Shown one piece after another: positions 25,079 through 57,800 of a stretch of 64,000 nt of DNA. Each line of letters starts with the position of its first letter. Position 1 is the stretch's first letter. Origin of the DNA: Takakia lepidozioides (taxonomy: Eukaryota > Plantae > Bryophyta); the NCBI GenBank assembly GCA_030704615.1, contig CM060733.1, positions 5,456,001-5,520,000 on the forward strand, given 5' to 3'. A program made the position numbers and the translations under genes. The notes beneath the pieces were generated by a model that saw only the letters and a program-made list of their open reading frames with translations, was not told the DNA's origin and ran no database searches.

Positions 25079-25083
25079 CTGCA

Positions 25084-29341: not shown

Positions 29342-29744
29342 GTGCATTTCACTCAGATATATCACATACCACAGACTTGTGCCTGATTCCGCTTGTTACG
29401 AAGGATCACTACCACCTTGGGCGGCTCACTCTGTGCGAAAGGTCCTCTAACAACTACTCTATGCATGCTGCGCTTCGTCATTGGTCAACAACACCCAACT
29501 CAGGGAGCCATCTATCTGCTCCAAAATGGTTGGTCTCCTTGGGCTTGCAGCGGGCACAAACAGATCGCGCTGCAAGGACCTGTTGGACATGGTCTGTGAG
29601 GCCATCATCACAGGCGGACTTGTATTAGGTGCCTTTGCTCGAACTTCCTCGGTTTCCATGCATTACCCCTGTCACCCGGGTTTCAATAATGTGCATCGGC
29701 TTAGCGGACATCTCTATAGAAATAGAGCAAGTTCACACAATTTG

Positions 29745-30465: not shown

Positions 30466-30467
30466 TT

Positions 30468-30479
30468 TGGTATCAGAGC
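30468..30479 (+). promoter_or_regulatory. Primer binding site, tRNA-iMet
   Basis: TGGTATCAGAGC two nt after the 5' LTR. Confidence 0.95.
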
Positions 30480-30519
30480 TTAGAGTTCAGTACGCGATCG
30501 TCCTTGGGATTGGCCTCAT

Positions 30520-35073: not shown

Positions 35074-35979
35074 TGGGGACATCAACCTTGGAGCGTGGAG
35101 GAGGAAATGCATGCTTAGCCCGGTTTAGCTAGCTCAGGAATCCGATTGCAAAAAACTTGTATTGTACAAACATTTGTTATAAAGGAAATGGGTTCCAAAT
35201 ATTGTGCGTCCTATTGTGTTTGGAATGGTGATGCATGGTGTGTTTGGCTAGTGTGTAGAATGCATGCTAGCTTACAAAAGTGGGAGAGGTAAATTGGGTA
35301 ATCGTGTGTTTGCGCAGTGCCGAAATCGGGTGACTCCCATCCCAGGGGCAAGGAAACTTGCGCCTTCTTTGGGAGTTCACGTGCTAGTGCGCACCTGGCG
35401 CGTGCGCGTACTATAATTGCGCTACCGAGGGGGTTGCCTTGTAGTGCGGGCTAACGCGGAAGCTACGTGCTTCCGTTCACGTACTATAATCGTGTAACCT
35501 CGGGACGAAGTCGTAGTGCGGCTTCGACGTGTTCCCGTACCTCAGGCCAGCATTCCAAGGCGGACCCAATTGTAGTGATTGAGGCGCACGGTTGGTTCAA
35601 GTTTATCTTCCTAGTCAAAGAGGGTTCCAGGTGAACCCTTGCTCAAGGTGATGCCAAAAGCGGCATCATGAGCGATCGCAAGCAATGTTGTTGCAGTAAG
35701 GCGATTCGATCCTCGGGAGGATCGTTCCTTGGCCTTGAAGTAGGCCAAGAAGAGTGCACTGGGAGGAGCTGGAGAGGCTCCACCCTTGGCCGGGACTTGG
35801 AGGAAGTCGGCCGAACTAGCTAGTGGAGAGTAGAGTCAAGTGTGGGGTTTGGTTCTTTGCCATGGGACGCCATGGTACAGGAAACAAACTCCTTGATGTG
35901 GGACGCCACAACTTGGATGTTCGTTTCTACAAAATGGACAAGTCGATGAGGACATCGACTCCCTGTTGGTAGGGGTGTG

Positions 35980-36702
35980 TGTCACGGCCCTTTGCCTTGA
36001 GGGCAGGGGGTCGGGACACATCAGGGGCTGCCCCTGTGGTGGGGGCAGCGGCAGCGATAGGTATGGGGGGGCTGAGGCACCCTTGAGTGCCCAAGGCACC
36101 AGGGAAGCGGAGGCGCTCACTAGGTGGAGCCCCGCACACCGGGTTGCGGTGGGGTGGCTCCACAAGGGGTGGTGGTAGCTTAGTGGGACTTAGTGGGGTG
36201 GCATAGGACTCACCATGGGGCGGAGACCTCGTGGTGGGAGTCGTGGGGAGTCTTGGGACTCATCACGGTCCATAGGGGCCGTGGTGATCGGGCCAAGACT
36301 CACCGCGACTCACCACCGGAGTCGAGGGTTTTCGTGGTGGTTCGCCATAAAATGGCATGGCTGGTTGTGGAACCCCCGCGGACAGCTACAGAAGTATATA
36401 TAGGGAGTAGTAACCCCGAGAACGGTGCAAGCCCGTTGGTGACCAAAAACAAGTGAGTAAGCGTGCGAGCCGGAAAGCGACCAAAGAGTGGGGAGCTGTT
36501 CCGGACTGCCATCTACCAAAGGGAATTCTCCTAGTCCCAAATAGGTGGAGGGTTTAGGAGGAAGCGAAGGGGGGACCGTTATGTCCCGGTGAGCAGCCGA
36601 AGCTCCAAGTTGGCCCGGGCGGCCAGGTTGGGAGTCAGGCGCGCGCATCAAAGCGAGTAACTATGACTTGAAGGGGAGCTTACCGGAGTGAGGTGCGCGA
36701 CA
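35980..36702 (+). repeat. 3' LTR of copy C
   Basis: Copy of the 5' LTR followed by TSD ATTTG. Confidence 0.95.
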
Positions 36703-37334
36703 ATTTGTAGGTTATACAAGAAACCATTAAGAGCGCCAATGCAAGTTGATCATTGTTGTACAAGTACGCACCCTCGGCCATAGCGAGACCTTGTCTGGAC
36801 GAACAGAAATACCACACAGCAGTGGTATGCATCATGTGGCCATGCGCTGCGCTCGATCAAGGAAACGGAGGCGGGTGCTGCTCAGCGCCAAAGCCTTACT
36901 GCACACGGTTGAAACGGCATCAAGGCCAGGGGCACCCGCCATGCTCACAGATATGCTACTGTACCAGAATACATGAGGTTCACGGAGCTATGTTGAGGTC
37001 CCCGGTTTGCCTCTACTGACAACCAGACTGACGCCCAAGCATCCCCGCCTACATTGCCTTACAATATGCTGCGGTAGAGTTCCCACGCTTCTTGGCCACG
37101 AATCAGCGGGGCCACCGGGCACGCCTACAAAGGTTGTGAGACAAACCCCTACTCCCCACCATTTGAATTCTGCTATGCTTTCTACAGGCACGATGATCTG
37201 GAAAACCAAACTCATCCTCCCCTCTCTTACACTGCATTAGCATTCTGCTACACCGTTAGCAACTGCTGTTCTAAGCCACCCAAAGGGCGACCGTTTGGAG
37301 GCTGTGATGGCTGCATATGTGTGGGGGAAAAGAA

Positions 37335-38480
37335 GCGAAGGGATAGAGTGTGGCCAGATTTTAGGCACAAGATTACTTATGATTCCCTGTGAATCAATAG
37401 CTACTAGCAACCTGCATGGGTAGATGGTCAACTGGAAGCTGCAGCAGCAACAACACAAATAGATAAATTCAGGCACTACTAATGAAGGCACCTTCTTCAA
37501 CACATTTCACCCTGTTTTTCCCTCTTATCAGAATCGGCCCTGAATTTTCATGTTGAATTCTGCAAGGTGTTGGTTGAGTAAACCTTTGATAGTTTGGAGT
37601 GACTGACTGATATTGCCAATGTGACAACAGGAAAGTATCCAGAAACAGGTAACAGAGACAACGAGACCAGGAGTTGTGGAATGAATACTTTTCTGACCCC
37701 AATCAATGGTGGGACAATCGAGGCAAAAGGTAAATGCCTGTTGGATTACAGAGAATAGCAAATGCAATTGAGCATAGGAACTAGTGTGATAAGTTGAGTT
37801 GGGTGTTTCCTAGAACAATTCTAGGCTTTCATTGTCAGTTGCTAGCAGCACAAAAAGGGTGAATGCATGATTTGTGCAAAGGCATGGATAGCTGAAGGAG
37901 CAGGGATAGAGTGTGGGTCCAGATTCATCTAAGAGGGCCAGATTTCAAGCTCCACATTACCTGTGATTCCCTGTGGATCAATAGCTACCAGAAACCTGCA
38001 TGGGTAGATGGTCAACTGGCAGCAGCGGCACAATTGATATAATCAGGCACTTGCTAATGAAAGCATCTTCTTCATTACATTTCCCTCTTATTAGAATATG
38101 CCCTAACTTTCCATGTTGAATTCTGCAAGTTAGTTGGTTGAGTGAATCTAGTTTGGAGTGACTTTGACATGATACTGCCGATGTGACAACAGGAAAGTAT
38201 CCAAAACTAGGTAACAGAGACGAGGACAAGCTGTGGAATGAATACTTTTCTGACCCCAGTCAATGGTGGGACAATCGAGGCAAGAAGGTGAATGCTTGTT
38301 GGATTATAGAGAGTAGCAGATGCAATTGAGCATAGGAACTAGTGTGATAAGTTGAGTTGGGTGTTTCCTAGAACAAATCTAGGCTGTCATCGTCAGCTGC
38401 TAGCAGCAAGACAAGGATGTATGCTTGATTTGTGCAGAGGCATGGATAGCTGAAGGAGCAAGGATATAGTGTGGGTCCAG
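37335..38480. repeat. Tandem duplication, two ~570-bp units
   Basis: Blocks such as acctgcatgggtagatggtcaactgg and gcaattgagcataggaactagtgtgataagttgagttgggtgtttcctagaacaa occur twice, ~560-585 bp apart. Confidence 0.9.
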
Positions 38481-38899
38481 AGTCAGTGTTTTCCGCCTTG
38501 GCAGGTTGCTCAGTGACCTTCCCTGATAGCTTTGGAGTATAGTGAGTGTCTCACAATGCAATGTTGTTGGTGCATCTTATGCAGGAACTTGGAAAACAAA
38601 CAAATGTCGTTTTTTGGAGCTTTAGGCTGAACGTCTGTGCTAGGCTGCATTGTGCAGCCTGGCCTCTACCTCAGACTCAGACTCAGATCTTTGATCTCAG
38701 ACTCAAACTCAAACTCAAACTCTTTGATGTCAGACTGAAGTGTATTTGGGCACTGAAACACTTATGTAATTTTGAATTATCGTTGCATCTGCTCATTCTA
38801 TCTGTTGTTCTGGCCATGCTTAGTCAGTTTTTCATGTCATGAGCATGTTGTTGCCATGATGCTTTGGAATTGTGTTTAGGTGTCTTTAGATCGTGATAC

Positions 38900-39454
38900 T
38901 GACCACAAGCAACCTACGGTGAACTGTGGTATCCTCCACATTTATGTGGAATGTCCTACAACGTAGGTCGTAGTATATTTCACACCCGCTATGGTCTTCT
39001 CCATAGTTATGTGGAATGACCTATAGTATAGGCAGTAAAATACTCCACACCCACACCAAGAGTTGCTCCAAAATACGCCACGTGTTGCCCTGACAAAAAT
39101 ACACGTGGTGCCCATACCGTTGCCCAGATGTCGTCAAGCCATGGTGACAGGTCGTCGCATAATTTTCCCGTAGGTGTGGACAAGTCCACACCCTTTGTAC
39201 GCCTAGGATCCACGTGGCGGTGTTCGCCAAAGCACACATCGCCCGTGGAAAAAGCCATTCACCCCGTGAAAAAAGCCACCTCTGGATTCAGCCACCCATG
39301 GACTTTTCCACAGAGCCACCCGAGAGTCAGGCCGTCCACGGGGTGTCCGAAAGCACTAGTCATTTCTTACACCCACGACAGGTGTGGATTGCGGCTGATT
39401 CCACACCAAAAAGTGTGGAAAAAGCCGTGGAAAAAGCCGGTTTCTCTTCTAGTG
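38900..39454. mobile_element. Right terminus of a CACTA (En/Spm) element with subterminal repeats
   Basis: Ends ...GTTTCTCTTCTAGTG (reverse complement CACTAGAAGAGAAAC), preceded by many direct and inverted TCCAC/GTGGA motifs (ccgtggaaaaagcc). Confidence 0.75.
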
Positions 39455-41552
39455 TATGAGACGGATGCTGGGGGTTATGGACGTCCGACTTTCCAAGGAG
39501 GCATAGTTGGGTTGCATGGAAGCTTTAGTATGCATGGCATCTGAGGGCCTAGTGGGGGTGTGTGGGAGTGCTTTGTGTGATGGTGTGATGGGGAGGGTTA
39601 ATACTCTAGCAGTGCGCTGATGGTTGGGTGATAGAGGGAAGGTCATTGGTCGTTGGTGGTGATTTTGATGAACATTAGGTGTCTCTTGTGTAGGATTATT
39701 TAACCGCGGCAAACATAAAGAGAAGGGGCGTGCTTGTTTGATCATATGAGGGGTGTTTGTATCAGCAGTTGGCTCGGATTGTGTGGAAGAGTGGCACATG
39801 CAATGAGTGTGAGAGAGTATTGTGAGAAAGTAGTGTGGGTAGAGAGTGTAAGGAAGTTGTGGGAAGGTATTGTATTGGGTATGAGCCAGAATTAAGAGTG
39901 CCCCATGTGGGTAAATAATAATGCAGTAACCGAAGAGTATGATTTGAGCACCATAACTGGGTACCATCCTGTACCGTGAGCAAGCTAATTGAGTAGTGCT
40001 AAAGGAGGCATAAACAACAAATGTGACACCAACATATGATGAAATTGGGGGGGCTGGTGATGTAACTGGCAAAGTAGCTTGCGAGATGATGACAATCCCC
40101 TCGGTGGTAGGAAGGAGAGCTGCAGTTGGTGAGAAAATCAGTTGCCGATTTGGGAAGGGGCAAGTCTCAAGCTGGTGGGTGGCTGTGGAAGTTGGTGAGG
40201 GGCCTGCAATCATTCCCCGTAGAGTGTCAGTAGAGGGCCGGTAAGATGGTAGTGCACACTGTAAGCTATCAAAGGTAAAGGCACTAGTGACTGAACTAAA
40301 GAGAGTGGCATGGTGGGCACAAGCATAGACGACATAAGAGGGGTACGAGACTCCTGTTGGTGGGACACCATTAGATTCAATGGGAGTGATCTGCCGGCAG
40401 CAGGAGGTAGCGGGTGTCAGCAATCGGAGCAGCAGGTCGGCTGCCCTGAGCAGGTCTTGTGGAGGAAATCTGTGATCTGTTGGTGAGTAGTATACATTAA
40501 TGATGATGGCAGAGGAGCAGGCACCTGGGAGGCAGACCTGTCATTGGCAATCCATACAATTGAGGGTGTCAGTACCTCACTCGGGTCAGCAGCAATTGGT
40601 AATGTATTAGCCTTGGAACGGGAAGCTGGGGTATTGTAAGCATATGCCAGCATACTTTGAGGGGCACTTTGGATCTGTAAAGGGCTAGTGTAGCAGCAAG
40701 AGGGGGGTTTGATGGAGCATACCTGGATAATATTAGGTGGGACAAGGAAGAGAGGAGCATTTGAGGGGCAGTAAACCTGGCACCAGCAGTGCGACGGGCA
40801 GAACCCAGTAGGGAGTGAAGACGGGAAGTCCAGATTGTGTTGAGGGTGAGTGCAAGGCCAAGCTCTGTCCTTGCTTCAAACTGCTGACAACTGAGGGTGA
40901 TATAGGAGGGCACCACAGCTGATGGCCCTAGCTTCCACGGCGTCCCGGTTTGTTGGTCTGATCCTGTGGGGTCGTTCCGATGGTGACAGAGCTGAATTGG
41001 ACGTGGTGTACACCAGGATTGAACAAATGCAGAGCCGACATTACTCCCATAGTTGGCTTGCGCTAAGTTCATTGGTGTAACAGGGTGGTTTGTATATGTC
41101 ATACAAGCAAAAAGATGGTCAGAGGGCATAATGTAGTAGATAATGGGCGGGGGTGATGGTGCAATAGTCAGATTTTGTATCTGCATTCCTGTTGTGTGAG
41201 GGAAGCCTTTTGTAAAGGTTGTAAATTGGTTGAGGTTTACAGAAGTGGCAGGGCAAGCATCAAAAAGGCAGATACTGGAAATCCGAGATATGTAGCTTGC
41301 AGCTGGAAGTATTGAATACCATAGTGTGTGCAATGCCGCATTGTTTGGTAGTCATGGATCTAGGACCCATCATTTGCAGTGTAGGGAGTATAACACAGCG
41401 ATGATGGTAAGCATACTTAGCCTCAGGGGTAGCAACTAATTTGATAACAGACTAGTGACGGGGGGAGTGGGCCCATCATTTGCTCATAGGTATCCAAAGC
41501 CTCCATCCCGTGAATGTGCAGCCATCTTATCAAACACTACCTTTGCATCCTT

Positions 41553-41870
41553 CACTACAAGAGAGGAGCATTTTTAGGACTACGGCTTTGGCGGAGTCAT
41601 AAAAACTGCACTAGGTACATGACTACAGAGCGCTGAAATGCATTACAGTTTTAGTTTTATGACTTTGTAGTATGGATATCACTACGGACTCCGGAAGAGT
41701 TAGGGACATTGGTCAAACATTGTTGACCATGATGACAGGGATGGTTTATATGACTAGTGTGATATGTTCGACTACACGTGGACGACGTTTCATGGAATCT
41801 TATGACTCCATGACTGAAGATGGTTTCAGAGCTCTATTTATACGACTACATCACTACACGTGTCATTGAA
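41553..41870. mobile_element. Left terminus of a second CACTA element with subterminal repeats
   Basis: Starts CACTACAAGAGA, followed by about 10 copies of (AT)GACTAC / GACTCC-like motifs in both orientations. Confidence 0.75.
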
Positions 41871-42944
41871 GGCACATATAATGCAAATAAGTTGCCCATT
41901 AGGTTGAAAAGTTACAAATTGCTAATAAGGTTGCCCATTAGTGTATCGTGAACAAAAAGGAGGGCTGGACTTGGCGTTTTTTTGTCTCCTGCGCACCACA
42001 CCACATAGCTGAGGGATGAACACGATGATAGCAGGATATGCAGCGTGGGATGAGGCGTTCAGCAAATGATGCACGAAGGAGAAGAGGAGGAGGAGACGAG
42101 ACAAGAGAAGCGAGCTCGCCGTTCTTGGGGAGTCAGCTTGGTCTTAGCAAGCATGTTTCAATCCTGACTACTCATCTACGACGTAGTGTTCGATCTCACA
42201 GACCAATCCGACATTACCTGACTACAGACACAAGAGCACACCAGAGGTCATCGGTCAATCCTCCTGGGTCATGGGACTACGGTGAGCATGTTCATAGCAG
42301 CGGGACAGGTCAAGGACAATGCGGTAGGCACCTTCTTCTTCACCCTATTTCAGCCTGTGTTGCCCTCTCCATCAGACTCGCCGCAAGATGCATATTGAAT
42401 TCTGTAGGTTAGGTCTTTGAGGTAGATCTGTGGTGGTTTTGGAGTGACTTTGGCAAGTTTAACTTGCCAGTGTGGGCCGCAGGGGGGGCTGCTATTTCAT
42501 GAGCCATGAGCCATGAGCGGCATGAGCCATGAGCAGAGTCGTAAGTGTGGAAAAAACATGAGCAGCACTATTTTCCGGAAATGAGTGTCCGCGGAATAGG
42601 GTTTAGGGTGCCACGGTCATAGGGGGAGAAGGACCTCCCGATGAAGGAGGTTCGGCAATGTTATTTAGAATTATATATTGAAAGGCAATGTTTCGCGAAT
42701 GGTAGGGTGGTACTGCTCTGTACAATGGGGGCCCATTTCAGCCTACCAGCCACTTGCAAAATCCACCCACACTCCCAATCCCAAACGAAATGAGCAATGA
42801 CGCATTCTGGGAACGATGGACACAGAATAGAATAAAAAGAGGGCACAATGAGGTTTTTATTGATCCACATGAATTGCATTTGAAGCACGTCTACTGTGCT
42901 GATTGTGCAATCAAATCTTTAGCCCTGTGCCTACTGAATACAAG

Positions 42945-43504
42945 TCACGTTGTCAATGGGACTTCGACTGCTCTCAGAACTAGCTCATGAGTCATGGGGC
43001 TCCTCCTGTAAAGTCGATTGCAGCCGTTGTACCGCCCCTAGTGATGTTCACCACAATGTCCTGCCCTTCAATCATACCACCATCGAATATGGAAATCTTC
43101 ACGTTTTCGTCGTCCACACCAATGCGAATGTCCCCATACAATGGAGAAGAGGAGCGCACTCCTTGAGGAGAATAGGTCTCTCCGATGGAGTCCACCCATG
43201 TCCAGTGGCAGCAGTTCCACCGCAAAGCATAGCAGTGCGCCTTCTTCTGCATGGGTGACCGTCGTAGCTGGGAAAATCGGAATCGAGGATGCGCAGGAGC
43301 CACGGACTCCTCAGACCAAGATCGTCACCCCGCTCGAAGGCGTAGTGGCCCAGGATATACTCAAAAGCCACCAATGTTTCCACAATCGAACCAGTATCTT
43401 CTGTGTAATCTGTGTACCAGATAACAATGTCTTCCGATGTGGCCGAATACATTGCATAATCGATGCCTCCAAATGGGCAAGGGTCCGGTTCCGAAGCACG
43501 GCAT
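42945..43504 (-). CDS. Unknown protein (~185 aa), paralog of 44060-44638; frameshifted in this assembly
   Basis: Joined frames: MPC..DPCPFGGIDYAMY...DIVIW...FEYILGHYAFERG...PWLLRILDSDFPSYDG...RWNCCHWT...PLYGDIRI...IFDGGMIEGQDIVV...HELVLRAVEVPLTT-stop; collinear with the paralog. Confidence 0.7.
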
Positions 43505-44059
43505 CCTTGCAAAGGAGGACCTGAGGACGACTTGGATGCAGATGACAATGACCTGCGGACAGCTACGAAGCCCTTAGATTTTGAAATGATGCGAAGCGGA
43601 AGAGCAGTCCGGCCTCCAATAATGGAGCATCTGGGTCCCACGTACCCACCGACGGAGGTGGAACGTGTTCATCACGCCGGCAGTGGATGAACCCATACAT
43701 CTTTCTCATCAACAAGTTATAGTTTGAGATCTGCCACCAAAGTCCATCCCCCCGGATAGAAATTCGGCGCCGCATTTACATCGAAGAGGGGATGGACTTC
43801 GTCGTGTCCAGTGGCTATCGGCCCACCTGGCAGTGAGTGCCCATAGTTTGCATGGCAGGGTAGGAAACTGAAACGGCTACATTCATGACAGCAGCCAATC
43901 TTCATCGGTCCAGGATCCTGTAGGGGGGAAATTTAAATGTGCCCTGGAGTGTTTGTGAGGAATTGCAGCGTTAGCTTGAACTTTTTCCAGCTACCGCGCT
44001 GCTCCTCCTCCATCCGGGAGCTGCTGTCATTGAGCGTACTCCGCTACTCTTTTTCAAGG

Positions 44060-44638
44060 ATGTCGTGTCGCCGAAATCCAGCCGACTGCCCTTATCATGG
44101 CCACGATTATGCTATGTTCAAACCAGAATCAGGAGACATCATTGTCTGGCTCTCTGTTTTCACAGACGCTGCTGGAATCAAGCAGAGTCTTTGCGCGCAA
44201 TGGAGTATCTGGAGGGCTATTACCGCTTTGAGCGAGGTGAGGGCGAGGGTCAATGCGGTCCGTGGGTCCTGAAAATTGTTGACCTCGATATACCAAGCTG
44301 GAAAGGGATGCCGGACAGATCACGCACGGCCTCGCTTTGGCGCTGGAACTGCTGCCAGTGGACCAGGGAGGACGGCACCGGGGAAAAACTATATACGTGC
44401 AGATCACTCCGCTCTTCCAGTGTATGGAGACATTCGGCTGAGTTGCGAAGACGAATCACACGGGCACATGAGGCCCACAGTGACCTTGTCAATGTATGAT
44501 TGTGGTATCATTGATGGACATGACATTGTCGTCGGCTCCAGCAAGGGCAGCAGAACGACCGAATTGCAGTTTACCTCGAGGTGCCGCAGCAGTGATGAGC
44601 TTGTTTTGAGAGGTATCGAAGTTTCGTCGACTTGGTGA
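44060..44638 (+). CDS. Unknown protein (~190 aa), paralog of 42945-43504; frameshifted in this assembly
   Basis: Joined frames: MSCRRNPADCPYHGHDYAMF...DIIVW...MEYLEGYYRFERG...PWVLKIVDLDIPSWKG...RWNCCQWT...PVYGDIRL...MYDCGIIDGHDIVV...DELVLRGIEVSSTW-stop. Confidence 0.7.
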
Positions 44639-44894
44639 AGCCCATGTAGAAGGAGGAAGGGCTTAGTTTTGTCTGCAGTTGGTAAATGTGAGACATCGTG
44701 TCCGATCAATAAACCCATCGTACCTCACTTCTGTATGATTGTGTTTCATTCTGTTGAATAACTGTCGGAATTGGCCCACTGTTTACAATTTGATGTCTCA
44801 TTTCTACAATGTGTCTGTCCGGATGAATATAGCAGAGTAACCGGTATGTGAGTCATGTGTCAAGAATATACCAGAGTAACGCCATGTCGGACAT

Positions 44895-45595
44895 TGAAAT
44901 GCGCCACCACATTTCCATGTGGGACAAGGAAATGCGGTGCATCATTTCCGTCCAGGTACACGAAATACCAACACGGGTCTATAAATTGGACAGACAACGA
45001 GGTTGGCATTGCAAATGCGGCGACGCATTTCCAGCTTGGCAATGGAAACTTCTTTTGGACAAGGGAATGCGGTGCCGCATTTCCGTCCAACACTTCGAAA
45101 AGTGTGACATTTCCGACCAGCGCGATGGAATGCGTTACCGCATTTCCGTGAGAGGGTCTGCAAATGGACAAATTGCGATGTCCGTTCTGGAAATGCGGCG
45201 CCGCATTTCCATGTCCGTCATCACTTTTTTTTACAATGGAATGCGGTGCCAATTTTTGCTGATGGGCCTGCAGTTCGAACAACGACCATCCCCAATATGG
45301 AAATGCGGCACCGCATTTTCAATTCCGCCATCTCGACCTCCTTGTTCGACCTCCTTGTTCGACCTCTGTAAGCGTGGTGGCATCCATGCAATGAGCGGGA
45401 GAGGCCAAACTGGCGTGTGGACAAAGGAAATTTTGGAAATGCGGCACCGCATTTCCAATCGGCCGATTACTTTTTACTATGCCAACATTGAAATGGAAAA
45501 TTTAGTCCCTCCCCTGTTTTGGAAATGCGGTGCCACATTTCCAAAAGAGGTTCTTAGAGTTGCCAAAATTTTGGAAATGCGGCGCCCATTTCTGA
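44895..45595. repeat. Left array of ~11 palindromes GGAAATGCGGYRCCGCATTTCC with irregular, mostly unrelated spacers
   Basis: Copies at approximately 44895, 44929, 45011, 45064, 45127, 45189, 45238, 45299, 45435, 45521, 45573. Confidence 0.92.
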
Positions 45596-45704
45596 TTTTG
45601 GGAGCGTCGTGGTTTGGGCGATTGTGTGGCTGGAATGCACACTGGAGAGGGGTCACGAATGTCGGGGAGAATTTCCTTTATATACTCTGGAAGAGAATTT
45701 ACAT

Positions 45705-48700
45705 TTACAGAGACTTCATTAAAATTCTATTAATCTTGAAATCATCCGAATCCTCATCCTGTTCTAGACTGTCCTGCTCCGCCTCCACCCCCTCAGTGCC
45801 TTTCTCATCTCCAGCGGACTGCTCGTTGGCCAGGCTTTCGAAAATCCCATCTTCCCCTTGCGGAACTGTCCATCTCACCTCCGTTGGGTCGTCTTCCTCC
45901 CTGTCTGCGTCGCTCTCATCCGCTGAATCACATATGTACTTTCGTACCCGTCTACCTGTCTGAGCTGCTGCCAACTCTTTCCTTATCCTTCTGTCCTCCC
46001 TAGCCCTCTCCAAAATCTGCTCTACTTTACTGGGATTCTCACTTCTTCTAATCGCTGTATTTGCGAGTTTAGCTGCATAACTAGGAGGGAGTAGTCCCTC
46101 ACCGGCTCGTCATGAAGTCGGCCCTCGCAAAGAACGGGACATTCTTCCTGGCAGGAAGTGTAGGCCCTACATGTTTCGACCCGGACCCTGCAATCCTGCA
46201 CATGACAATCATCAACGAGACTAATGAGAACCACAGTCGGGAAATTCCTTTGACAAAAATGACCCAGAAGGCTTTGCAAACTTACAATGTTTGCACTCAC
46301 TCGTATTCCGGGTTTCTCCTCCGCATCAATGTCCACTGTGTCTTCCTCGGACTCCGACGAATCCGAGGAGACTTCCGCTCTGTCGGGAGACTTAACATTC
46401 CGTTGCAGCCCTTCCAGATGGGATCCCCACACGGATGAATCCTCCTCGTAGGCAAAGAGGTGCCGGTCGAAAAACCGCCCAGCCCACATTGAGGCACCTG
46501 TTACAATGCCATCCACACATTACCACATGGCGCTTCAGATGTTGCGAACTACATCCTAACGAGAATTTGCAGAACAGCATAGATCAAGATTCTGCATACC
46601 TGTCCCACAGATGAGGTCGAGCACTGTGCCCCCCACGTCTGTGCATGTCTCCATAATTGTCTGAATGAAGGCAGGGCTCCGAGTCCGTGAGTACCGCAGG
46701 GGTTCCGTTGAAGTGAGGCTATGAGGGAGAAGTTCCTTGGGAACGTTGTTGAACAGAACGTCGTAATCGAGGGGGTCGCAGTTCGGGTCAACCTTTCCTC
46801 CCTCCTTCCGGAAAGCAAAGGTGGAGTTCTCCTTCACAAAGCAGTATGCATCGAACTGCTTCGTCTGCATACACATGGGGGAACGATTAGAAACCGAATG
46901 CGGCACCGCATTTGAAAACACCCAAGCAAATGAATGGACGAGTGCCAGTGTCGTAATCACCTTCTTCCCTTCCGACCGAAGGCCCAGTGTGTTGATGCAC
47001 GTCCACTTCTTTTTCAAATCGGGACGGCGCTCTTGCGGGTCCACTTCGCAATTCCTGTCTGAGTGTTTTTCCTCTGCTCGCCAGGACAACCACACAGCCT
47101 CTGTCGTCCAACACCATGCGGGCAAGCCCGAATCCTTTCTTCCAAAAGTCCTCCGAGTACCTGTTCCAAGATGGCAAAGCTTGCAGTCCTTCCACAGGCT
47201 CTCCGTCCGGAATATCCAAGATGATCATATCGCAAGACCACTCGGTGGCATTTCCGCCCTCCTACAATCCTTGTCTGCACACACCCTCTCAAAGAACGAG
47301 ACCATATTCTGAAATCCTGGGGTGTCGGAAGGCTCTTCGGCAGTCGCCTTCTTCAGTGCTCTGCCCTTCAGACCCTCCATGGTCTTCATGTATGCCAACT
47401 TGGCTGCCCGTCCATCCAAAGCCGCCAAGAAACTCTCATTTACACACTGGACTACTGTTTCGGGAGCCACTTTCGGCCTCTTCATTTCCACCGGCTCGAA
47501 AGGGTGCCCCCTTGGGGGGTTGAAGAGTGCCTTCTTTGCCGAGCCAGTTCTCGTGCCTCTCGTGACAACGGTGGGCACAGGGGAGGCAGCCTGCGTTTGG
47601 GGGGTGGGCTGGTTGCAAAGTCTCCATCGGAGTCCTCTTCCTCACCCTCTTCCTGAACAGGCTGTTTCTGCTTCTTCGTTTTGGCGGGTGTCACAACAGC
47701 TGCTCCTTGCTGGCGAGTCCTCTTCTTCGACCCCTTCTGTTGGGCCTGCACAGCTGCATCCACCGTCTTTTGTGCCATCTCAGCTGCCTTTCTGGATTCT
47801 TCCAGAGCAGCAGATTCCTTTGCCGACTTTGGCCCAGCAGGGACACGTCTTTCCTTTCTCTTCTCTTCTGCCAAGGGTGCAGATCTTTCTCAGACTCGTC
47901 AACAATACCGCCAGACATGTCCAGGTACCACGGGCATCCAACGAGATGCGCGGGATGCCATTGTTTCTGCATCTCGGGTGTGTAGACACAGCTTGGGCCC
48001 GCCACGGTCCAAGCCATGAAGAACGGGGGCTCTTGAGCCAGGGCCCCTGTCTGAAGGAGCACGTATTTTCATATACCTGCAAGGCAGTCAGCATGCGTGA
48101 GCAAAGTTGAGACCAACCTACTCGCAGAGTGCCACCGAAAACATAAAATGCGAATGCGGTGCCGCATTTCCGAGACAAACCTCGTAACCAGGCTTCGCAT
48201 ACAAGGGCAGCTGTGCTTCACCTGTAAACAATTCGCATTGCAGCTTTCCCCGCTCCCTCCTGATGTGTAAACTCCACGCTCCTTCTTGCTGTCTGTAGCT
48301 CTCTGGCGAAAAGGTTGTCCTTGTACGCACATCTGAAACGTGTCACGTAGTCTTCCAATGTCTGTGTTCCATCCCATTTGACGTACAAGCCGAACGAATT
48401 TGTGTGCATTACGACTTGCTCCTTCGCATTCGACATTACCTGCGATTCCCAAATGCATTGTCACGTAGCAGTTCAGGGAATTCATTTCAGAAAAGCAAAT
48501 CTGGGGAAGTACCTTGAATTACCTGGAACCACCAAGTCATACGGTTGAGCCACACATCCACTGCAGGGTCGGAAACTTCGAGTGGAAAAGACCACATTGT
48601 CCTTATGCTCTCGGATGCATTCCAGATCGACAGCCACCGTGTCTGCCATTTCCGATCCAATGTCAGGAGCTGGAAGAGAGTGGCTATTGCTAGGAAGGAA

Positions 48701-50840
48701 CTTCAGTGCATTGAAACCTCACCTTCTCTTTCGCCTCCACACATGCCGTTGAGAGTGATGCAGTTTCTCCAATTGCATGGTCGGCTGCATGGCCCGAGAA
48801 TAGTGTTTTGCAATCTCGGGGATGAAGTCCTTTCCAAGTGCCGGATCTGCAATTGCCACCAGCTTCACAAGCTTTGACTTGTATTTGGTTCTGGACTTGA
48901 CACCGGCTTCCTTCAAGTGCTCAGTCAATGACTGCAACGTTTTCACCTGCCCTCACTTTCCATGAAGAAGCGTTTGGCATGGCCCAATCCAGCTTGATGT
49001 TTGACTGCCAACAAAAACATGCAGAAGCGTTACATTCGATTCATGTGGAAAGATTACTGGAAATTGGGGAAGGATGAGCAGAGGGAAATTGGAGGACGAC
49101 TTACTTCGTATATCACCTCCACCATTCCATCCATAGTGAGACGATACCATGTCCGGTCTGTTTTTGCAACGGCTTTCTGAATGAGCTCGGGCTCCAGCAT
49201 TTCCGCAAACATCTGCGGATCAGTGAGACCAGTTTTCCTCACCCTGTACAGCATATGTGCCATGTGGGTATGCACGTACGCATTCTCAGTGACCCTGCAA
49301 GGCACACTCTCCAGTTCAGTACACGGAAGCACGGAAACAAACCAGAATGGAAACCGAAATGCGGCACCGCATTTCGAACGTGCTAGGGAGGGTATGAGTA
49401 TCTTACGAGTTGAGGTCCGCCATGGCATTCTTGAGCAGGAGGAGTCTGCCGCCTTCACCTTCAGGATGACACACTCCACCATGTAATGCCAGCCAATGTG
49501 CTTGGCATGGTTCTGCTTGATGTACTCCACCAGGCGAGAAGTCGGTGATTCCCGTCCCACACAAAGAACATTTTACCAGACATATGGCCGAAGTCTGGAT
49601 CACCCTTCAGCGTCGCCTCGAATTCGTCGTTGCGAGTGTGCCAGTGGGTATCCCACGTTGACAATTCATCGGCAGTGGGTCCACGAGTTTCGCCGTCCTC
49701 ATTCTCAATGGAAACGTAAAACGCTGCCGATCCCAGACGGTACCCTTCTCGAAATGCGAACTTCAGCTTATCCACATCTCCGGGAAGGGCCTGCCTGACG
49801 ATGGAAGGGAGACCATGCGACAGAGTGGGATTGAAGAGTCCGCTGGAATACCCTGTTGCCCAGAACTCTGCCAATGCTACTGTGTGTCTCCTCCAACATT
49901 TTATCCGCTGCACTTTTGAAATCCTCCGGAGACATGTCTGTAGGTGCCGGTAGTGGCTGAGCAGCTGGAGCATCCTCAACTGGAGCTGCACTCTAGGGCC
50001 TGTCGCGGGCAATTCTGCCATTGCAGAGGCCTCCTCCGGGCCTGCTTGCTCATCGGTGGTGAGGTCTTGCTGCGAACGTTGAGCGACAGCACCCTCCTCC
50101 GGTACCAAATCGAGATCAACGGTCGATCCCATTGCCTTCGCTGCAGCAGAGTCGGCCCCAACATCTGCAGGCGGGAAATCCTCCAGGAACTGAGCTTCAG
50201 CTCGTGGAAGCGGTTTTGCGGGAGATTGTTCGGCCGTCGCCCTGATTGCCTTCTGCTTCCCTCATCCTTGCAGGTGAAGGTGTCTGCTGCAATTGAATCT
50301 GTCTTTTACCCTGCTGCTTCATTCGCGTTGGGGGGGGTGAATCGGCCTGAGCCGGTTCAGAAGCCAGTAGAGGGACGGGCTGCTTCTTCTTCGACTTTGC
50401 TGGAGAAGGGCCCGACCCTGCTGGCGATTCTCCATGACCAAAGAACGCGAGTCGATCTCTGGGGCTTTGAACTTGCCCTTCGAAGCCGCGTCTTTGAATC
50501 GCACAGGGCTAGGCCCGGCAGGAATACCCGCGCTCGGGATCGGGTGGGTGTACGTGCTGCAGCTAGCTCCTCGGACTCTTCCTGCGGCTCTTCGGATTCC
50601 TGCGATCCCTCCAGCACGTCCACCTTTCCTGTTAGGCATGCAAACATGTTCTGCATTCAAGTCTCCTAGCATTCAGTCTAAGAATTACAGAAGCAAAATG
50701 GGGGGTTCGGTGCTCGATCAGCTGCGCACAGCCCGATCGCATGGAGCTCTCACTGGTGGCTGGGTTGCCTGAGTGGCCTGCTGCTCGGAGATGGCAATCT
50801 CCTCCTGTAGACGCATCTGCTTCCTCCCCTTCGGCATTGG
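45705..50840 (-). CDS. Multi-exon gene: ParB/Srx-like domain plus beta-class amino (N4-C/N6-A) DNA methyltransferase-like domain; frameshifted in this assembly
   Basis: FFVWDGNHRLLAW (DGNHR 49542-49556); motif IV-like DMIILDIPDG (~47203-47230); RTRSPAFIQTIMETCTDVGGTVLDLICGT|GASMWAGRFFDRHLFAYEED (motifs X, I, II), joined by removing GT..AG intron 46498-46599. Further GT..AG introns at 49295-49406, 49005-49104, 48077-48180 and probably ~46865-46960. Acidic and basic low-complexity linkers. Start codon uncertain. Confidence 0.75.
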
Positions 50841-51230
50841 CCTACGTCCGAAGTATAATTTCCGGAGCTTGCGACGAGGTCTCCTGTCTGGTGCACGAAC
50901 TCCCCCTCTCAGGTTCGAGCATAAGAAGAACAGAGAGAGGGAAAAGGGCAAAGAGTGCAGATGGAAAGGGCGCGAGAGGGGTGACTGAGGAGACACGACA
51001 AAAGTAGATGAAACGGCGGTGATGCACCACTTGGGTTCGAAAGGGTTGGACGAAATGTTCTCCTCGTGGAGTTTGCGTCATTACGAAATTCGAATCGTTC
51101 AGGGTACGCCTGCCGTCCGAAAAACAAACATCATTATCCAACGGTCAGGCCCGCCGCCTCATGCCCCTTCAGTCAGATAGAGTGCCGACATGTGCAGCAA
51201 TTCCGTTGCTCCACGTGTTCACATTTCAAG

Positions 51231-52623
51231 GCATTTCCGTCCCAGCGTCTGATGAGTTGGAGTGAAAATGCGAATGCGGCGCCGCAATTCCGTTAAGTAC
51301 CATCACGAAGCTACACATCCGTACTTGTTGGAAGAAAATGCGGCACCGCATTTCCGTTCCACCTTCACATACCTTAGTTGTTGAACGGAAATACGGTGCC
51401 GCATTTCCGTCCCACAGCTCCATGTATGAGATACAAAAGGGAAATGCGGCGCCGCATTTCCGTTCTGGAATGTCGAAAGGTGCGATTCGGACGGAATGAG
51501 GCACAACATTTCAGTTCCCGTGGTTCATGATTTTCAATGTGAACGGAAATGCGGTACCGCATTTCCGTTCCCCTTCACATACGTTAGTTGATGAACGGAA
51601 ATGTCGTGCCACATTTCCGTCGGGAAAGTATAGAGGTCTCACTGGGACAGAAATGCGGTGCCGCATTTCCGGTCTGGAAAGTTTGAAGGTCTCACATGGA
51701 TGGAAATGCGGCACCACATTTCCGTACCACAGCTCCAGGCCCATATACAAAACGGAAATGCGGCGCCGCATTTCCGTTCTAGAATGTCGGAAGGTGCGAC
51801 TCGGACGGAAATGCGGTGCCGCATTTCTGTTCCCGTTGCGCACGATTTTCAGTCAGAACGGAAATGCGGTACCGCATTTCCGTTCTGTAGAGTATTAACG
51901 TCTGACGCTGGCGGAAATGCTGTGCCGCATTTTCGTTCCACAGCTCCATGCCTCACATACAAAACGGAAATGCGGCGCCGCATTTCCGTTTTGGAATGTC
52001 GGAAGGTGCGACTCCGACGGAAATGCGGTACCGCGTTTCAGTTCCGATGTTTCAGGATATTTCATCAGAACGGAAATGCGGTGCCGCATTTCCGTCTGGA
52101 ATGTTTGGAGTGCGACTCGATGGAAATGCGCTGCCGCATTTCAGTTCCGATGGTTCACGATTTTCAGTCAGAACGGAAATGCGGTACCGCATTTCCGTTC
52201 TGGATAGTATGAATGTCTCAAGGGTCGGAATTGCGCTGTCTCAAGCGGTCGGAATCGCACTCGGCTCCATGCATCAGATACAAAATGGAAATGCGGCGCC
52301 GCATTTCCGTTCTGGAATGTCGGAAAGTGCGACTCCGACAGAAATCGGTGCCGCATTTCTGTTCCCGTTGTTCATAATTCTCAATCAGAACGGAAATGCG
52401 GTACCGCATTTCCGTTCCACCTTCACATACCGTGCTTGTTGATGGAAATGCGGTACCGCATTTCCGTTATGGAGAGTATGAATGTCTTTTAAGGACGGAA
52501 ATGTGCTGCAGCATTTCTATCCTCAGCTCCATGCATCAGATACAAAATGGAAATGCGGCGCCGCATTTCCGTTCTGGAATGTCGAAAAGTGCGACTCGGA
52601 CGGAAATGCGGTGCCGCATTTCT
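51231..52623. repeat. Right array: ~26 copies of the 26-bp palindrome ACGGAAATGCGGYRCCGCATTTCCGT, 52-53 bp period, running into the gap
   Basis: Starts at approximately 51385, 51438, 51491, 51543, 51595, 51647, 51700, 51752, 51805, 51858, 51911, 51964, 52017, 52070 ... 52390, 52442, 52495, 52547, 52600; about five recurring spacer types. Confidence 0.97.
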
Positions 52624-53123
52624 NNNNNNNNNNNNNNNNNNNNNNNNNNNNNNNNNNNNNNNNNNNNNNNNNNNNNNNNNNNNNNNNNNNNNNNNNNNNN
52701 NNNNNNNNNNNNNNNNNNNNNNNNNNNNNNNNNNNNNNNNNNNNNNNNNNNNNNNNNNNNNNNNNNNNNNNNNNNNNNNNNNNNNNNNNNNNNNNNNNNN
52801 NNNNNNNNNNNNNNNNNNNNNNNNNNNNNNNNNNNNNNNNNNNNNNNNNNNNNNNNNNNNNNNNNNNNNNNNNNNNNNNNNNNNNNNNNNNNNNNNNNNN
52901 NNNNNNNNNNNNNNNNNNNNNNNNNNNNNNNNNNNNNNNNNNNNNNNNNNNNNNNNNNNNNNNNNNNNNNNNNNNNNNNNNNNNNNNNNNNNNNNNNNNN
53001 NNNNNNNNNNNNNNNNNNNNNNNNNNNNNNNNNNNNNNNNNNNNNNNNNNNNNNNNNNNNNNNNNNNNNNNNNNNNNNNNNNNNNNNNNNNNNNNNNNNN
53101 NNNNNNNNNNNNNNNNNNNNNNN
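52624..53123. other. Assembly gap (500 N)
   Basis: Run of N. Confidence 1.
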
Positions 53124-53299
53124 CGTTCTTGTCCTCTTTCTTTTTGACACCTTCTTGCACTTCCTTCTCAGCTGTGTGTCGCGCCCTGACCTCCACGTGT
53201 CTATTTTTAAAGTAATTTCCGTTTCCTCTTCCGTCAGCCATTTTCCTGAAGTTATTATGCGTCCACTTGTCACTGATTCTATGGATCGTGTAACTTTAG

Positions 53300-53592
53300 T
53301 AGGCTGTGTTGAGCTGTGACAGGCTGTGTCATACTGTGTTACGCTGTGATAGGCTGTGATGCACTGTGGTAAGCTGTGATAGGCTGTGACACGCTGTGGT
53401 AGCTTGTGATAGGCTGTGTTGCGCCGTGCTGGGCTGTGATAGGCTGTGTCACGTCGTGATGGGCTGTGATAGGCTGTGTTGCGCCGTGCTGGGCTGTGAT
53501 AGGCTGTGTCACGTTGTGATAGGCTGTGTCACGTCGTGATGGGCTGTGATAGGCTGTGCTTTGCCTTGATGGGCTGTGATAGGATGTGTCAC
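53300..53592. repeat. Tandem 10/30-bp repeats (aggctgtgat / ggctgtgtc)
   Basis: Direct reading; the same GGCTGTG core occurs in the LTR repeats. Confidence 0.9.
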
Positions 53593-54814
53593 GTTTGTTT
53601 TGCCCACCCTGGTCATATATGCTGGGCCTAGCGACAAGTGCTCCATACTCCGTTCGTAACACTGGTGCAGCCCGTGACTGCTCTTGCGGTTCAACATGCA
53701 AATCATGTTGCAAGGGTTTGTCATGGATACCACTGTACCCCTTCAACTTATTTGCATTGACTCTTCCCAGCATTTCTTTGTTAATGGTTTGTAACATGGC
53801 GGTGTTGTTATCATACATTTTTTGTATGACATAAGGTCCTTTCCATGGTGATTTAAGCTTAGAAGCTTGAATCTTTCCTTTCTTCTGCAACCATAGAACC
53901 AAATCCCCCATCTTAAAAGTCTTTAACTTGCCTTCATCAAACTGTTCCTTTCGCTTCATCTGAATTCTGGTCATATTATCAGCTGCATCAGCACGTACTT
54001 CTTCCACATGGTATAATTCATGTTTCCTGACCTTGATGGAGTCTTGCAATTCCATTCTCTTTCCCCACTCCGTTCTCATGGTAGGTAACAGGAATTCCAC
54101 TGGAAGTAAGGCTTCCATACCATAAACTAATTGGAATGGTGTATACTTAGTGGTGACTTTATATGAAGTCCTGTATGACCACAAAGCTGTCAGCAGCTTC
54201 GTATCCCAATCTGTTCTGTTTGCATTGACTATCTTAGCCAAGATAGTACATAGTATTTTGTTGGTAGCCTCTGCCTGCCCATTACCCTGTGGGTAATATG
54301 TTGTACTCTTTCTATGCACAATCATAAACTCTTTAGTCAACAACTCAATGGTCTCATTCATGAAGTGACTTCCTTGATCACTGATAAATTCTAAGGGACA
54401 GCCAAATCGTGTAAGTATGTTCTCGTACAGGAACCTTGCTGTGGACTTGGCTGTGTTGTCCCTCAAAGCTTTAGCTTCCACCCACTTTGTAGTATAATCA
54501 GTGGCTGTAATTATGTACCTGTTTCGTGTATTCTTGGATGGTGGGTTAATTGGTCCAACAAAGTCTAGTCCCCATTTCTGAAATGGTTCCGTAGGCATTG
54601 TAGGATGCAAGGCCATCCTTCCAGATCTCTGCAAAGGTCCTAGCCTCTGACATTCATCACACTTCTGACAATACTCGTGTACATCTTTGAACAAAGTAGG
54701 CCACCAGTATCCTGCGAGTAGTATCTTTCTACTGGTAGTCTCTTCTCCAAAATGACCTCCAGCCACTCCTTTATGAACTTCCGCCAAAACTTTATTCACT
54801 TCATGGTGGTACAA
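53339..54814 (-). CDS. Integrase with repetitive C-terminal extension
   Basis: H..GHFG...CDEC zinc finger, WGLDFVGP, SDQGSHF, GNGQAE, WKGPY; tail of TQPITAHH repeats. Confidence 0.92.
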   Translation of the reverse strand: MYHHEVNKVLAEVHKGVAGGHFGEETTSRKILLAGYWWPTLFKDVHEYCQKCDECQRLGPLQRSGRMALHPTMPTEPFQKWGLDFVGPINPPSKNTRNRYIITATDYTTKWVEAKALRDNTAKSTARFLYENILTRFGCPLEFISDQGSHFMNETIELLTKEFMIVHRKSTTYYPQGNGQAEATNKILCTILAKIVNANRTDWDTKLLTALWSYRTSYKVTTKYTPFQLVYGMEALLPVEFLLPTMRTEWGKRMELQDSIKVRKHELYHVEEVRADAADNMTRIQMKRKEQFDEGKLKTFKMGDLVLWLQKKGKIQASKLKSPWKGPYVIQKMYDNNTAMLQTINKEMLGRVNANKLKGYSGIHDKPLQHDLHVEPQEQSRAAPVLRTEYGALVARPSIYDQGGQNKRDTSYHSPSRQSTAYHSPSRRDTAYHNVTQPITAQHGATQPITAHHDVTQPITAQHGATQPITSYHSVSQPITAYHSASQPITA

Positions 54815-57800
54815 GCATCATTTTAGTACTCCATCAGGTCCTAACTTATACATTCTGCTTCCTACCATAGTATAAGGTAAAGCTTTGATAGCGATTCTCT
54901 TCCTCTGCTCCTTACCATAGCTAGGTGGGCACTGACCATGAAAGGTAGTATCTGATTGGCCACTTGCCAATCTAACCAGTCATCTGCACTTCCCTGCACC
55001 TCCACTGCAAAGAGACTCGCATCTGGTAATTGATCATCTATTCCTGTGGCTGGTTCTCCTGTTGACAATCGTGACAAATGATCCGCCACAAGATGCAAGT
55101 CTTCTAGGCTTGTAAACAACCTCGAACTCAAACTCGTGCAAGATTATCAACCATCTTGCTATTCTTCCGCTTATCAGAGGTTTGTTTACCAGGTATATCA
55201 GAGCCTGGTGATCCACATAGAACATAAACTTCTTGCCCAACAGGTAATGCTTGAATTTCTTCACTGCATAGATCATTGCCAATTGCTTCTCTTTCCGTTG
55301 TGCTATAGTTCCTCTCAGCACTGTTCATCAACCGGCTAGCATAGTACACAGGTGAATCTATATTCCCTGTAACATTCTGGGCTAACAACGCTCCAACGCT
55401 TTCTCCTGATGCATGCAGTGAACATGGAATACTACATGCCAGTGAGGGTTAATCAGCACAGGTGTAGTTGTTACTGACAGTGTAAGTTCCTCAAATGCCT
55501 GTTGACATTCCGCTGTCCAGGCAAACACTGCATCTTTCTTCAGTAGTTTGCTCATGGTGCTTGCTATTTGTGCATACCTTTTGACAAATCTCCTATAATA
55601 ACTGGTTTTGCCCAAGGAATCTTCGTAGACTTTTAACATTCACTGGTGGTGGAGAGGCTTTAATGGACTCTGTCTTTCTGGGATCCACAAGGAGTCCCTT
55701 CTTACACACAATGTGTCCCTGAAGCACCCCTAAGTTCACACAGAAAGTACACTTCTCTGGATTCAGGCCCAGACCTATCCCATGCATCTGGCCAAACATA
55801 ACTCCAATTTATGCAAGTGCTCACTCTTAGAGCTGTACACACTGAAATCATCCAAAAATACATGCATGAAATCATCCAGATACTCATGAAAAGATTCACT
55901 TATCACTCTTTGAAAGGTCGCTGGTGCATTACAAAGTCCAAAGGGCATGACTTTGTATGCATAAGCCCCCCAGTCTGTGATGAAAGCTGTTTTCCCTTGG
56001 TCTTCTTCTGCCACTTGCACTTGATTATAACCACTGAAGCCATCCATGAATGAGTACATCTCATGGCCGCCACAGTGTCTAATACTGCTTCTGTGAATGG
56101 CAAAGGGAAATGATCTTTCTTCGTACAAGCATTCAGCTTCTTATAGTTCACACCAACTCTTAGTTTGCCATTCTTCTTGGGAACTATTACAATGGGTGAC
56201 AACCAAGTTGTATACTCTATGGGATATATAAACTTAGCCTCAGCCAACTTCTTTATCTCTTCTCCAACCTCTGTGCGTAGTTGGGATTCATTCTATACCT
56301 CGCCTGCTTGATGGTACTGACCCTGGTTCCAGTTCAATCTTATGCTGACAGACTCAGGTGGTATCCCTTTTAGATCCTCATAGCTCCAAGCAAATACATC
56401 TCTGTATTTTGATGAACAAGCTTTTAGCTTCTTCGAAGAATTCCGGCTCCAAATCAGCTCCTACTTCACCATCCTCGGTTCCTCTTTAGTTCCCACATTT
56501 ACTTCTCTCACCTGCTCATCAGCTGTGATGGTCCAACCAGTCACCACTTCATCCTGTAAGCTCACAGTGGCTGGTTCTTCTAGGATTTCTATTTTCCTTC
56601 TCTTTCTTCATAGAAATGTGATGGGTAAATGCTGGTTTCCTCTTCAATTGGTGTTGCTGTCACTACACCACAGCAGATACCTCTCAAAAAACTTAGGCTT
56701 TCCAGCCGCATCTCTGCAACCTGCTCCCACTCGGGTGTGCAGCAAATAGGGTAGCTTCCTGCTCCTCATCCAGTCCTCCTTTCCAGTCATACTCTCTGAC
56801 TCCTCGAGGTCTTCTTGTAGCAGGTAATCTACTAGATTTCTTTGTGGTAATTGTATCTCGTGTATCCATTATGCACGGTTAGTAACTGAGAATTCCAGTC
56901 ATGGAATACCCTGGCCTGTTTCAGCCACGGTCGTCCCCAATAATAAGGAGTAAGCCTCCATGACTTCATCCATTTCTAATACAGTTACTGTGATCATAAA
57001 GATCATTTTCTGTATCTGTATCTTGGGAATGGGGGCTTTTTCATGTTACTTTAGACCAAAGCTTCTTCCTAAGTTGTCTGTCATGATATTTACTTACTCC
57101 ATAACCACCACCATCTATCATACATCCTTAGGTCTGTGCTTCCAATTCTCAATTGGATTAAACTGGCATGAATCATCAAAGTCCATGACTGTTTCTCTTC
57201 TCCGCCCTTCCGCGTCACATTTATAACTGGGCACCTTGCTTTCCGGTCTTGTTTCCTGTCTCTTGGGCAATTCGATTGATTGCTTGATACAGCCTGTGCC
57301 TACAATAAGGTGCCACAGCTAATAGCTGTCCGCAATGGTAATTTCGCTTTGGTCTGACATATTACTTCAGCCAAAGTCTCTTCATTAGCGTTGGCATGTC
57401 TGCATCTTCTTTTTTTCCTTTCTTCCTCACTCCCTTCTTTTTCTCCATTCCGATCAGAGGAATCTGCCAACAGGAATATCAGTACTCTTTTTCATTTCCC
57501 TTATAGTATCTGCCACTTCCTTGTGCAGTTCCTTCTCATCTTCCAGTCTCTTCATCTTCAGGCATATCATTGCCACTCCCCTTTCTCATCTTCCTTCCTC
57601 GTCTACTGGAGTATTAGTTTGGCTTTACTTTCTTGTTACTACCTTGTACGTACTACTTCTGGTACAACACATGGATATGGCCTAACCATGTGAGCTGCCC
57701 CCACTGGGCCCTCATTCACAGGACTCTATCATCTCATTCTGGTGTCTTATTCAGAATGAACAGGCTGCCTGCGATGTCCTGGCTGATTACAATAGTAACA

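Follow-up and report, generated by a model that had tools for sequence, protein, structure and literature searches.

A spliced gene joining ParB/sulfiredoxin-like and amino-methyltransferase-like domains, bracketed by palindrome arrays, in a probable Mutator-like transposon of Takakia lepidozioides

The window analysed here, a stretch of 64,000 nucleotides from Takakia lepidozioides (GenBank assembly GCA_030704615.1, contig CM060733.1, positions 5,456,001 to 5,520,000 of the forward strand), contains a spliced gene that joins a ParB/sulfiredoxin (Srx)-like domain to a beta-class amino-methyltransferase (MTase)-like domain and is bracketed by arrays of one palindrome. Gene and palindromes belong to a real and evolutionarily old transposon accessory system, a new land-plant version of a kind predicted in algae, whose function is likewise a prediction. 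The gene and its two domains are placed as follows.

45705-50837, minus strand: spliced gene with some 1,400 codons in about 10 exons; it encodes a ParB/Srx domain, a middle region that is helical, and an amino-MTase-like domain of the beta class
49407-49865, minus strand: ParB/Srx-like nucleotide-binding domain with the motifs IPLCR, VR, WDGNHR and AMxDxN
46400-47261, minus strand: beta-class amino-MTase-like domain with motif IV DIPD (47216) and motif I DLICGTG (46618)

The original prediction, made from the letters of the window, was of a spliced fusion gene with DGNHR and MTase motifs, and the same layout recurs in related loci fetched from Riccia, Adiantum and moss- and peat-associated metagenomes. 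Long annotated proteins of Riccia sorocarpa and Adiantum nelumboides match both the DGNHR and the DIPDG exons, and the ParB exon is followed downstream by the MTase exons in 19 of the 21 related loci that extend far enough. The window exons align in order with the homologs, middle exons included. The gene model was built on GT-AG introns; it is uncertain at its start, in the first and the last intron and at the acceptor site of intron 4. Searches were run exon by exon, the window exons were entered as separate alignment rows and structures were predicted for intact relatives; a Pfam search of ten pieces of the window was blank. No viral or true bacterial family member was found. The apparent bacterial member, L085 (CADCWO010000058.1, a Synechococcales metagenome-assembled genome), is spliced and was therefore rejected as probable plant contamination.

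The frame of the gene is broken in this assembly by many 1-bp frameshifts, which are single-base deletions. These are probably long-read assembly errors for two reasons: first, about 9 of the 12 listed indels sit in or beside homopolymer runs; second, the extra bases are present in near-identical contigs from another sample. Copy-specific decay is the alternative, and on the same two grounds the reading of the gene as a true pseudogene is disfavoured. Elsewhere in the window an intact pentatricopeptide repeat (PPR) gene of 938 codons (692-3505, minus strand) and an intact open reading frame (ORF) of 528 codons (8646-10229, minus strand) stand beside repeats with 1-bp frameshifts, which is consistent with poor polishing in repeats.

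The DGNHR motif lies at 49556-49542 on the minus strand. Searched alone, its exon finds 296 relatives (best E 6e-21); viral relatives of the exon were not found. The G, N, H and R of the motif are at least 90% conserved over 54 alignment rows. The structural model of the domain is that of relative P0002, which shares 50% identity with the window exon, and has a predicted local distance difference test score (pLDDT) of 84. All eight VIA matches of this model with Z of at least 5 are ParB/Srx members (KorB 8.0, PadC 8.0 and Srx 6.6 among them) and the next match scores 3.9, while the best Foldseek matches, at E 3e-3 or weaker, are Srx, Noc and ParB. The ParB/Srx fold anticipated from the motif is thus supported, by modelling, at the level of the family. 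A tree of the ParB core was unable to place the window copy.

The MTase-like domain is split by an intron between the exon of motif IV (DIPDG at 47216-47202) and that of motif I (DLICGT at 46618-46600), both on the minus strand, and the family hidden Markov model (HMM) matches both exons. A phmmer comparison of the motif I piece with the PDB was blank; the family HMM finds matches in the PDB at E 3e-6, and the Riccia relative P0153 matches Pfam N6_N4_Mtase at E 5e-5. A model of the C-terminal domain of a Riccia relative (pLDDT 69) resembles M1.HpyAVI in Foldseek (E 6.6e-9) and CcrM, MboIIA and PvuII in VIA (Z 13.7-14.4, with CcrM at 14.4 and PvuII at 13.7). The domain of the family has a permuted Rossmann fold in which motif IV, the target recognition domain (TRD) and motif I follow in the order IV-TRD-I, and the beta-class fold that had been proposed for the gene is therefore, as far as modelling goes, borne out at family level.

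Whether this fold writes a mark is a separate matter. In amino-MTase chemistry the aromatic residue of motif IV stacks the flipped base. Motif IV across the family reads D/N-[ILV]-P-x, DIPD in the window, and its fourth residue is aromatic in 1 of 81 relatives, a Phe in one Adiantum protein; motif I (DxFxGxG) is degenerate, its Asp and glycines being partly kept (DLICGTG, DFAGGWG, DVAASTG, DWNASTG). It has been proposed that such a protein is an active writer, which would load at the palindromes, deposit N4-methylcytosine or N6-methyladenine (4mC/6mA) or another modification, and thereby block host 5-methylcytosine (5mC) or mark self. The complete beta-class fold, the first residue of motif IV (D/N in 80 of 81 relatives) and its Pro at position 3 (51 of 81), the retained Asp and glycines of the S-adenosylmethionine (SAM) site and the presence of CG and CCG sites within the palindrome are in its favour, and the same idea was put forward for Ectocarpus Sola1-1 (PMC12477816). 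Nevertheless, this is unlikely: 80 of 81 relatives lack the aromatic residue of the D/N/S-P-P-Y/F/W motif, there is no TSPPY like that of the Marchantia protein MpDN4MT1, and motif I takes degenerate forms such as DLICGTG, DVAASTG and DWNASTG. Given the loss of the base-stacking residue, canonical 4mC/6mA writing by the family appears doubtful from the sequences, so that of the writer originally envisaged the fold stands and the catalytic motif does not. Identity with DN4MT1 or N4CMT was rejected in the absence of SPPY from motif IV.

The palindrome consists of a 22-bp core, GGAAATGCGG-YR-CCGCATTTCC, and measures 26 bp when its AC/GT ends are counted. Its copies are distributed as follows.

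51270-52624: upstream array of 23-25 copies with a period of 52-53 bp (five helical turns)
44895-45594: downstream array of 9-10 copies at irregular spacing (52, 63, 63, 83, 86, 110, 136)
49355-49376: single palindrome in the intron 49406-49295
48150-48171: single palindrome in the intron 48221-48077
46894-46915: single degenerate palindrome in the intron 46960-46865
43758-43779: single palindrome on which a paralog pair is symmetrically centred, with a 12-bp inverted repeat around it

The predicted arrays flanking the gene, and the further copies in its introns and between the paralogs, proved to be far from chance: 29 palindromes are counted at up to 2 mismatches and 36 at up to 5, where shuffles give 0-0.2, and every copy falls within 43758-52624. 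The upstream array is interrupted by a 500-N assembly gap at 52624. All three gene-internal single palindromes lie in GT-AG introns, with introns accounting for about 18% of the gene (chance about 0.5%), and the palindromes of the window are confined to non-coding DNA, including these introns and the midpoint that the two paralogs share. The suggested likeness to parS did not hold at the level of sequence, palindromicity being the only common trait. The intronic copies are about 1.2-1.3 kb apart (1321, 1256 and 1205 over 45573-49355), in the manner of regularly placed loading sites. A CRISPR (clustered regularly interspaced short palindromic repeats) reading of the arrays was rejected, as the spacers follow a repeating higher-order cycle and nothing like a cas gene was seen.

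Arrays also accompany the relatives. At least 6 copies of one palindrome occur in 12 of 30 non-redundant related loci, against at most 4 in shuffles and other window DNA, so that the co-occurrence by which the original prediction was to be checked is seen, each of these loci carrying arrays of its own. The palindrome differs family by family, several families having a CGG-NN-CCG core, and the exact palindrome of the window was not found in the metagenome contigs. In relative L001 (1239-16152) 36 palindromes with a period of about 330 bp are spread over an intron and a region upstream that is very long, and in Riccia sorocarpa L002 (2629-15077) two related variants are present, one upstream of the gene and the other near the element ends.

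Beyond the downstream array lies the paralog pair.

42993-43745, minus strand: paralog A, about 200 amino acids, frameshifted, with a depth matching that of the element elsewhere
43794-44638, plus strand: paralog B, 44-51% identical to A in amino acids, with a probable intron at 43835-43991

The two are mirror images centred on the palindrome at 43758, with their ATGs about 50 bp apart and each 12-15 bp from it; the 12-bp inverted repeat beside this palindrome contains both putative ATGs. Identity between A and B by codon position is 0.67/0.70/0.56, position 3 being the most diverged. No match to the pair was found in the 5.8-billion set, Atlas (twice), Pfam, PHROGs, phages, viral contigs or the fetched loci, and it may represent cargo that is specific to a subfamily and under the control of the palindrome.

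Further out lie a probable end of the element and a CACTA-type terminus.

42484-42540: probable end of a high-copy element, a G-run followed by (CATGAGC)n, marked by a depth step, a diverging contig and the tandem repeat
41553-41900, plus strand: CACTA-type terminus with subterminal repeats, probably of a separate, lower-copy element

That the gene is transposon cargo, as first suggested, is upheld by repeat-like depth and by a transposase neighbour in the relatives. This transposase stands head-to-head with the gene in 7-8 of 17 related loci having at least 5 kb upstream, and it has motifs of the Mutator-like element (MULE) type with weak Pfam matches to SWIM (E 0.002) and ZSWIM RNaseH-like (E 0.18). 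Contigs from four runs have high, flat depth across 42544-47300, the paralog pair included. Over the CACTA end (41549-42145) depth drops about 10-fold in run X1, 3-20-fold in X3 and about 2-fold in X4, which is moderate evidence, as contig depth does not equal copy number. A contig from a different sample departs from the window sequence upstream of 42484, the place at which the G-run and (CATGAGC)n start. Given the depth, the diverging contig and the head-to-head MULE-type transposases of the relatives, the carrier is probably a Mutator-like element whose end at about 42484, the only one in the window, lies next to a separate CACTA piece or within it. Its transposase arm would lie past the upstream array, where the gap and then a Gypsy element now stand.

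The carrier had been taken for a CACTA element starting at 41553, and it is possible that the module belongs to one, either as a subfamily that has switched carrier or as a nested composite moving as one. The terminus itself looks genuine, with CACTACAA at 41553 and ATGACT/GACTAC subterminal repeats, the depth drop is only about 2-fold in X4, and ParB cargo of algae does switch between superfamilies. However, this is improbable when the larger depth drops in X1 and X3 are set beside the PPR and other repeat fragments that occupy the space between the CACTA end and 42484, the contig that diverges there and the Mutator-like transposases of the relatives. The location downstream of a CACTA terminus thus stands, and membership of the same element is doubtful. 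No TnpD or TnpA was seen in the window or in the scanned ORFs of related loci, no dedicated CACTA profile search having been made. Over 41553-42480 the terminus is followed by PPR-gene fragments and repeat pieces, an arrangement that is possibly Pack-CACTA-like.

Another possibility is that the protein is a transposition cofactor, which would bind the arrays to compact or bridge an element of 11-20 kb, or to bring its ends together for a Mutator transposase whose terminal inverted repeats are weak or missing. TnpA of En/Spm is a comparable cofactor, ParB-family proteins are known to bridge and condense DNA, and the gene, long co-inherited with the transposase, has arrays on both sides, near the element ends in L002. 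We regard such a role as distinctly unlikely, since it leaves the retention of the MTase fold unexplained and the sites gather at promoters and introns, not at termini alone.

The reading we prefer, at a probability of roughly 0.5, is that the gene encodes a VANC-like factor of self-recognition and anti-silencing, dimeric and palindrome-binding, with a nucleoside triphosphate (NTP) loading switch and an altered MTase fold. The gene would form the cargo arm of a DNA transposon that is abundant in a seed-free land plant and probably Mutator-like. The protein may bind the palindrome of its own family as a dimer, the 52-53 bp phasing setting the sites on one helical face, and the ParB-type NTP site may act as a loading or dimer switch for occupying or spreading along the element. 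The MTase fold would serve mainly as a DNA- or SAM-binding module, a reader or base-flipping device, and not as a canonical writer. Self-recognition would keep the promoters of the element accessible and resist host 5mC silencing, as VANC does for the VANDAL Mutators. This reading is supported by the two predicted folds and their fusion, the Mutator-like neighbour, the high and flat depth over the element, the family-specific arrays, the restriction of sites to non-coding DNA and the precedent of VANC. CpG retention in the element (observed/expected 0.7-1.4) is not distinctive, the neighbouring Gypsy element having 0.78.

Several observations weigh against this reading. No DNA-binding domain was identified, the helical segment after the ParB core matching helix-turn-helix (HTH)-type proteins at only Z of about 3, and the profile of the middle region had no match in the PDB. 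A cytidine triphosphate (CTP) clamp is not established by the modelled domain, since the ParB/Srx fold occurs also in sulfiredoxin, in the kinases SerK and SbnI and in DndB. The transposase is not in the window, the upstream array running into the assembly gap, and the single possible RNA run, X8, gave nothing over the MTase exons. Fewer than 6 palindrome copies are present in 18 of the 30 related loci, many of which are short or decayed, and the palindromes could instead be binding sites of the transposase.

The low counts in those 18 loci, together with the want of an identified binding domain, favour an explanation in which the arrays have no connection with the ParB-MTase protein, being either sites bound by the transposase or a minisatellite carried as a passenger, and the protein has another job, such as autoregulation or host interference; moreover, any two parts of one element are expected to co-occur. 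This is nevertheless quite unlikely for three reasons: first, the lone copies in the introns and between the paralogs occupy precise positions; second, different palindromes recur in unrelated families; third, in red algae a ParB gene adjoined by inverted-repeat arrays is carried by another transposon superfamily (bioRxiv 2025.02.11.637652). A bolder form of the anti-silencing reading, which we hold only tentatively and think rather unlikely, is a nucleotide-gated ParB-type sliding clamp in transposons of liverworts, mosses and ferns. Such a clamp would load at parS-like palindromes and carry an unconventional amino-methyltransferase, or a reader of modified bases, along the element as a spreading epigenetic mark or shield on plant chromatin, programmed by sequence, with the paralog pair as a further palindrome-controlled component.

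The claim of a new system has to be narrowed, given that both this pairing of domains and this hypothesis have been published for algal transposons (PMC12477816; bioRxiv 2025.02.11.637652). In Ectocarpus, Sola1-1_Ec32 carries a 1,104-aa gene for a ParB-like and N4C/N6A MTase protein opposite its transposase, and such proteins were suggested as a possible new class that binds and modifies its own element (PMC12477816, Genome Biol 2025). The likeness lies in the joining of a ParB-like and an N4/N6 MTase domain in one accessory gene, opposite the transposase in the relatives of the window gene. In contrast to this brown alga and its Sola carrier, the family described here, compared by architecture, is found in land plants with a Mutator-like carrier and has palindrome arrays and a motif IV without the aromatic residue; the algal proteins did not come up in the sequence searches. 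In Bostrychia, PAG2 and PAG3 of Plavaka elements (EnSpm lineage) include a ParB-like accessory gene beside tandem inverted-repeat arrays, and the cassette also has an N6-methylase; such cargo occurs on Mutators of Chondrus too (bioRxiv 2025.02.11.637652). There, however, ParB is fused to a 2-oxoglutarate (2OG) oxygenase and the methylase is separate, with SET, whereas ParB and MTase form one protein here. ParB-linked methylases of phages and chlorophytes have been reviewed (PMC4738411), and no paper on a land-plant ParB-MTase family was found in the literature searched.

With VANC the system shares a Mutator cargo gene and family-specific motifs in non-coding tandem repeats; the motifs of the VANDAL elements of Arabidopsis are amplified as tandem repeats and vary between families (PMC5735166). 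Unlike here, where function is predicted, that of VANC has been shown experimentally, and no homology between the two was detected, VANC not being known as a ParB or MTase protein. The ParB/Srx fold, the DGxHR motif, the conserved upstream Arg and downstream Asn and the clustered palindromes are shared with bacterial ParB, KorB and Noc, whereas the domain insertion, the introns, the MTase fusion and a palindrome unlike parS are not. No ParB HTH was detected, and no ParA was seen among the inspected ORFs of the window and related loci, no search aimed at ParA having been made. Fold and IV-TRD-I motif order are those of CcrM, M.MboIIA, M.PvuII, M1.HpyAVI, rotifer N4CMT and Marchantia DN4MT1; unlike these beta-class amino-MTases, the family has D-[LIV]-P-x without the aromatic residue as motif IV and no SPPY, and is thus not DN4MT1- or N4CMT-like, Marchantia DN4MT1, with its TSPPY, being a different protein. 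The window gene would work in the manner of the algal cargo and perhaps of VANC, and it can be filed neither as a ParABS system nor as an active amino-MTase.

To our knowledge, VANC is the only transposon accessory protein demonstrated to recognise and de-silence its own family, and the ParB-methylase cargo genes of algae are predictions only. An abundant and diverse land-plant family in which each subfamily has a readable palindrome, and whose hosts are related to tractable models, makes the prediction directly testable; the outcome would tell whether a ParB switch of bacterial type can operate in eukaryotic chromatin, and new sequence-specific epigenome tools could result. The family also accounts for many genes of Riccia and Adiantum that are annotated as hypothetical or mislabelled: the Riccia sorocarpa proteins P0151, P0153, P0154 and P0174, with others, are named 'Trimethylguanosine synthase' in UniRef, probably wrongly.

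The rest of the window is largely repetitive. Gypsy-type long terminal repeat (LTR) retroelements occupy 20580-36710, where they are rearranged into large inverted duplications, and 53125-61250, and pieces resembling long interspersed nuclear elements (LINEs) lie at about 14500-20500 and about 39400-41450. Two tandem 560-bp copies at 37352-38485 encode a putative motif of the WWDNR type, a type known from plant organellar single-stranded DNA-binding and PPR proteins.

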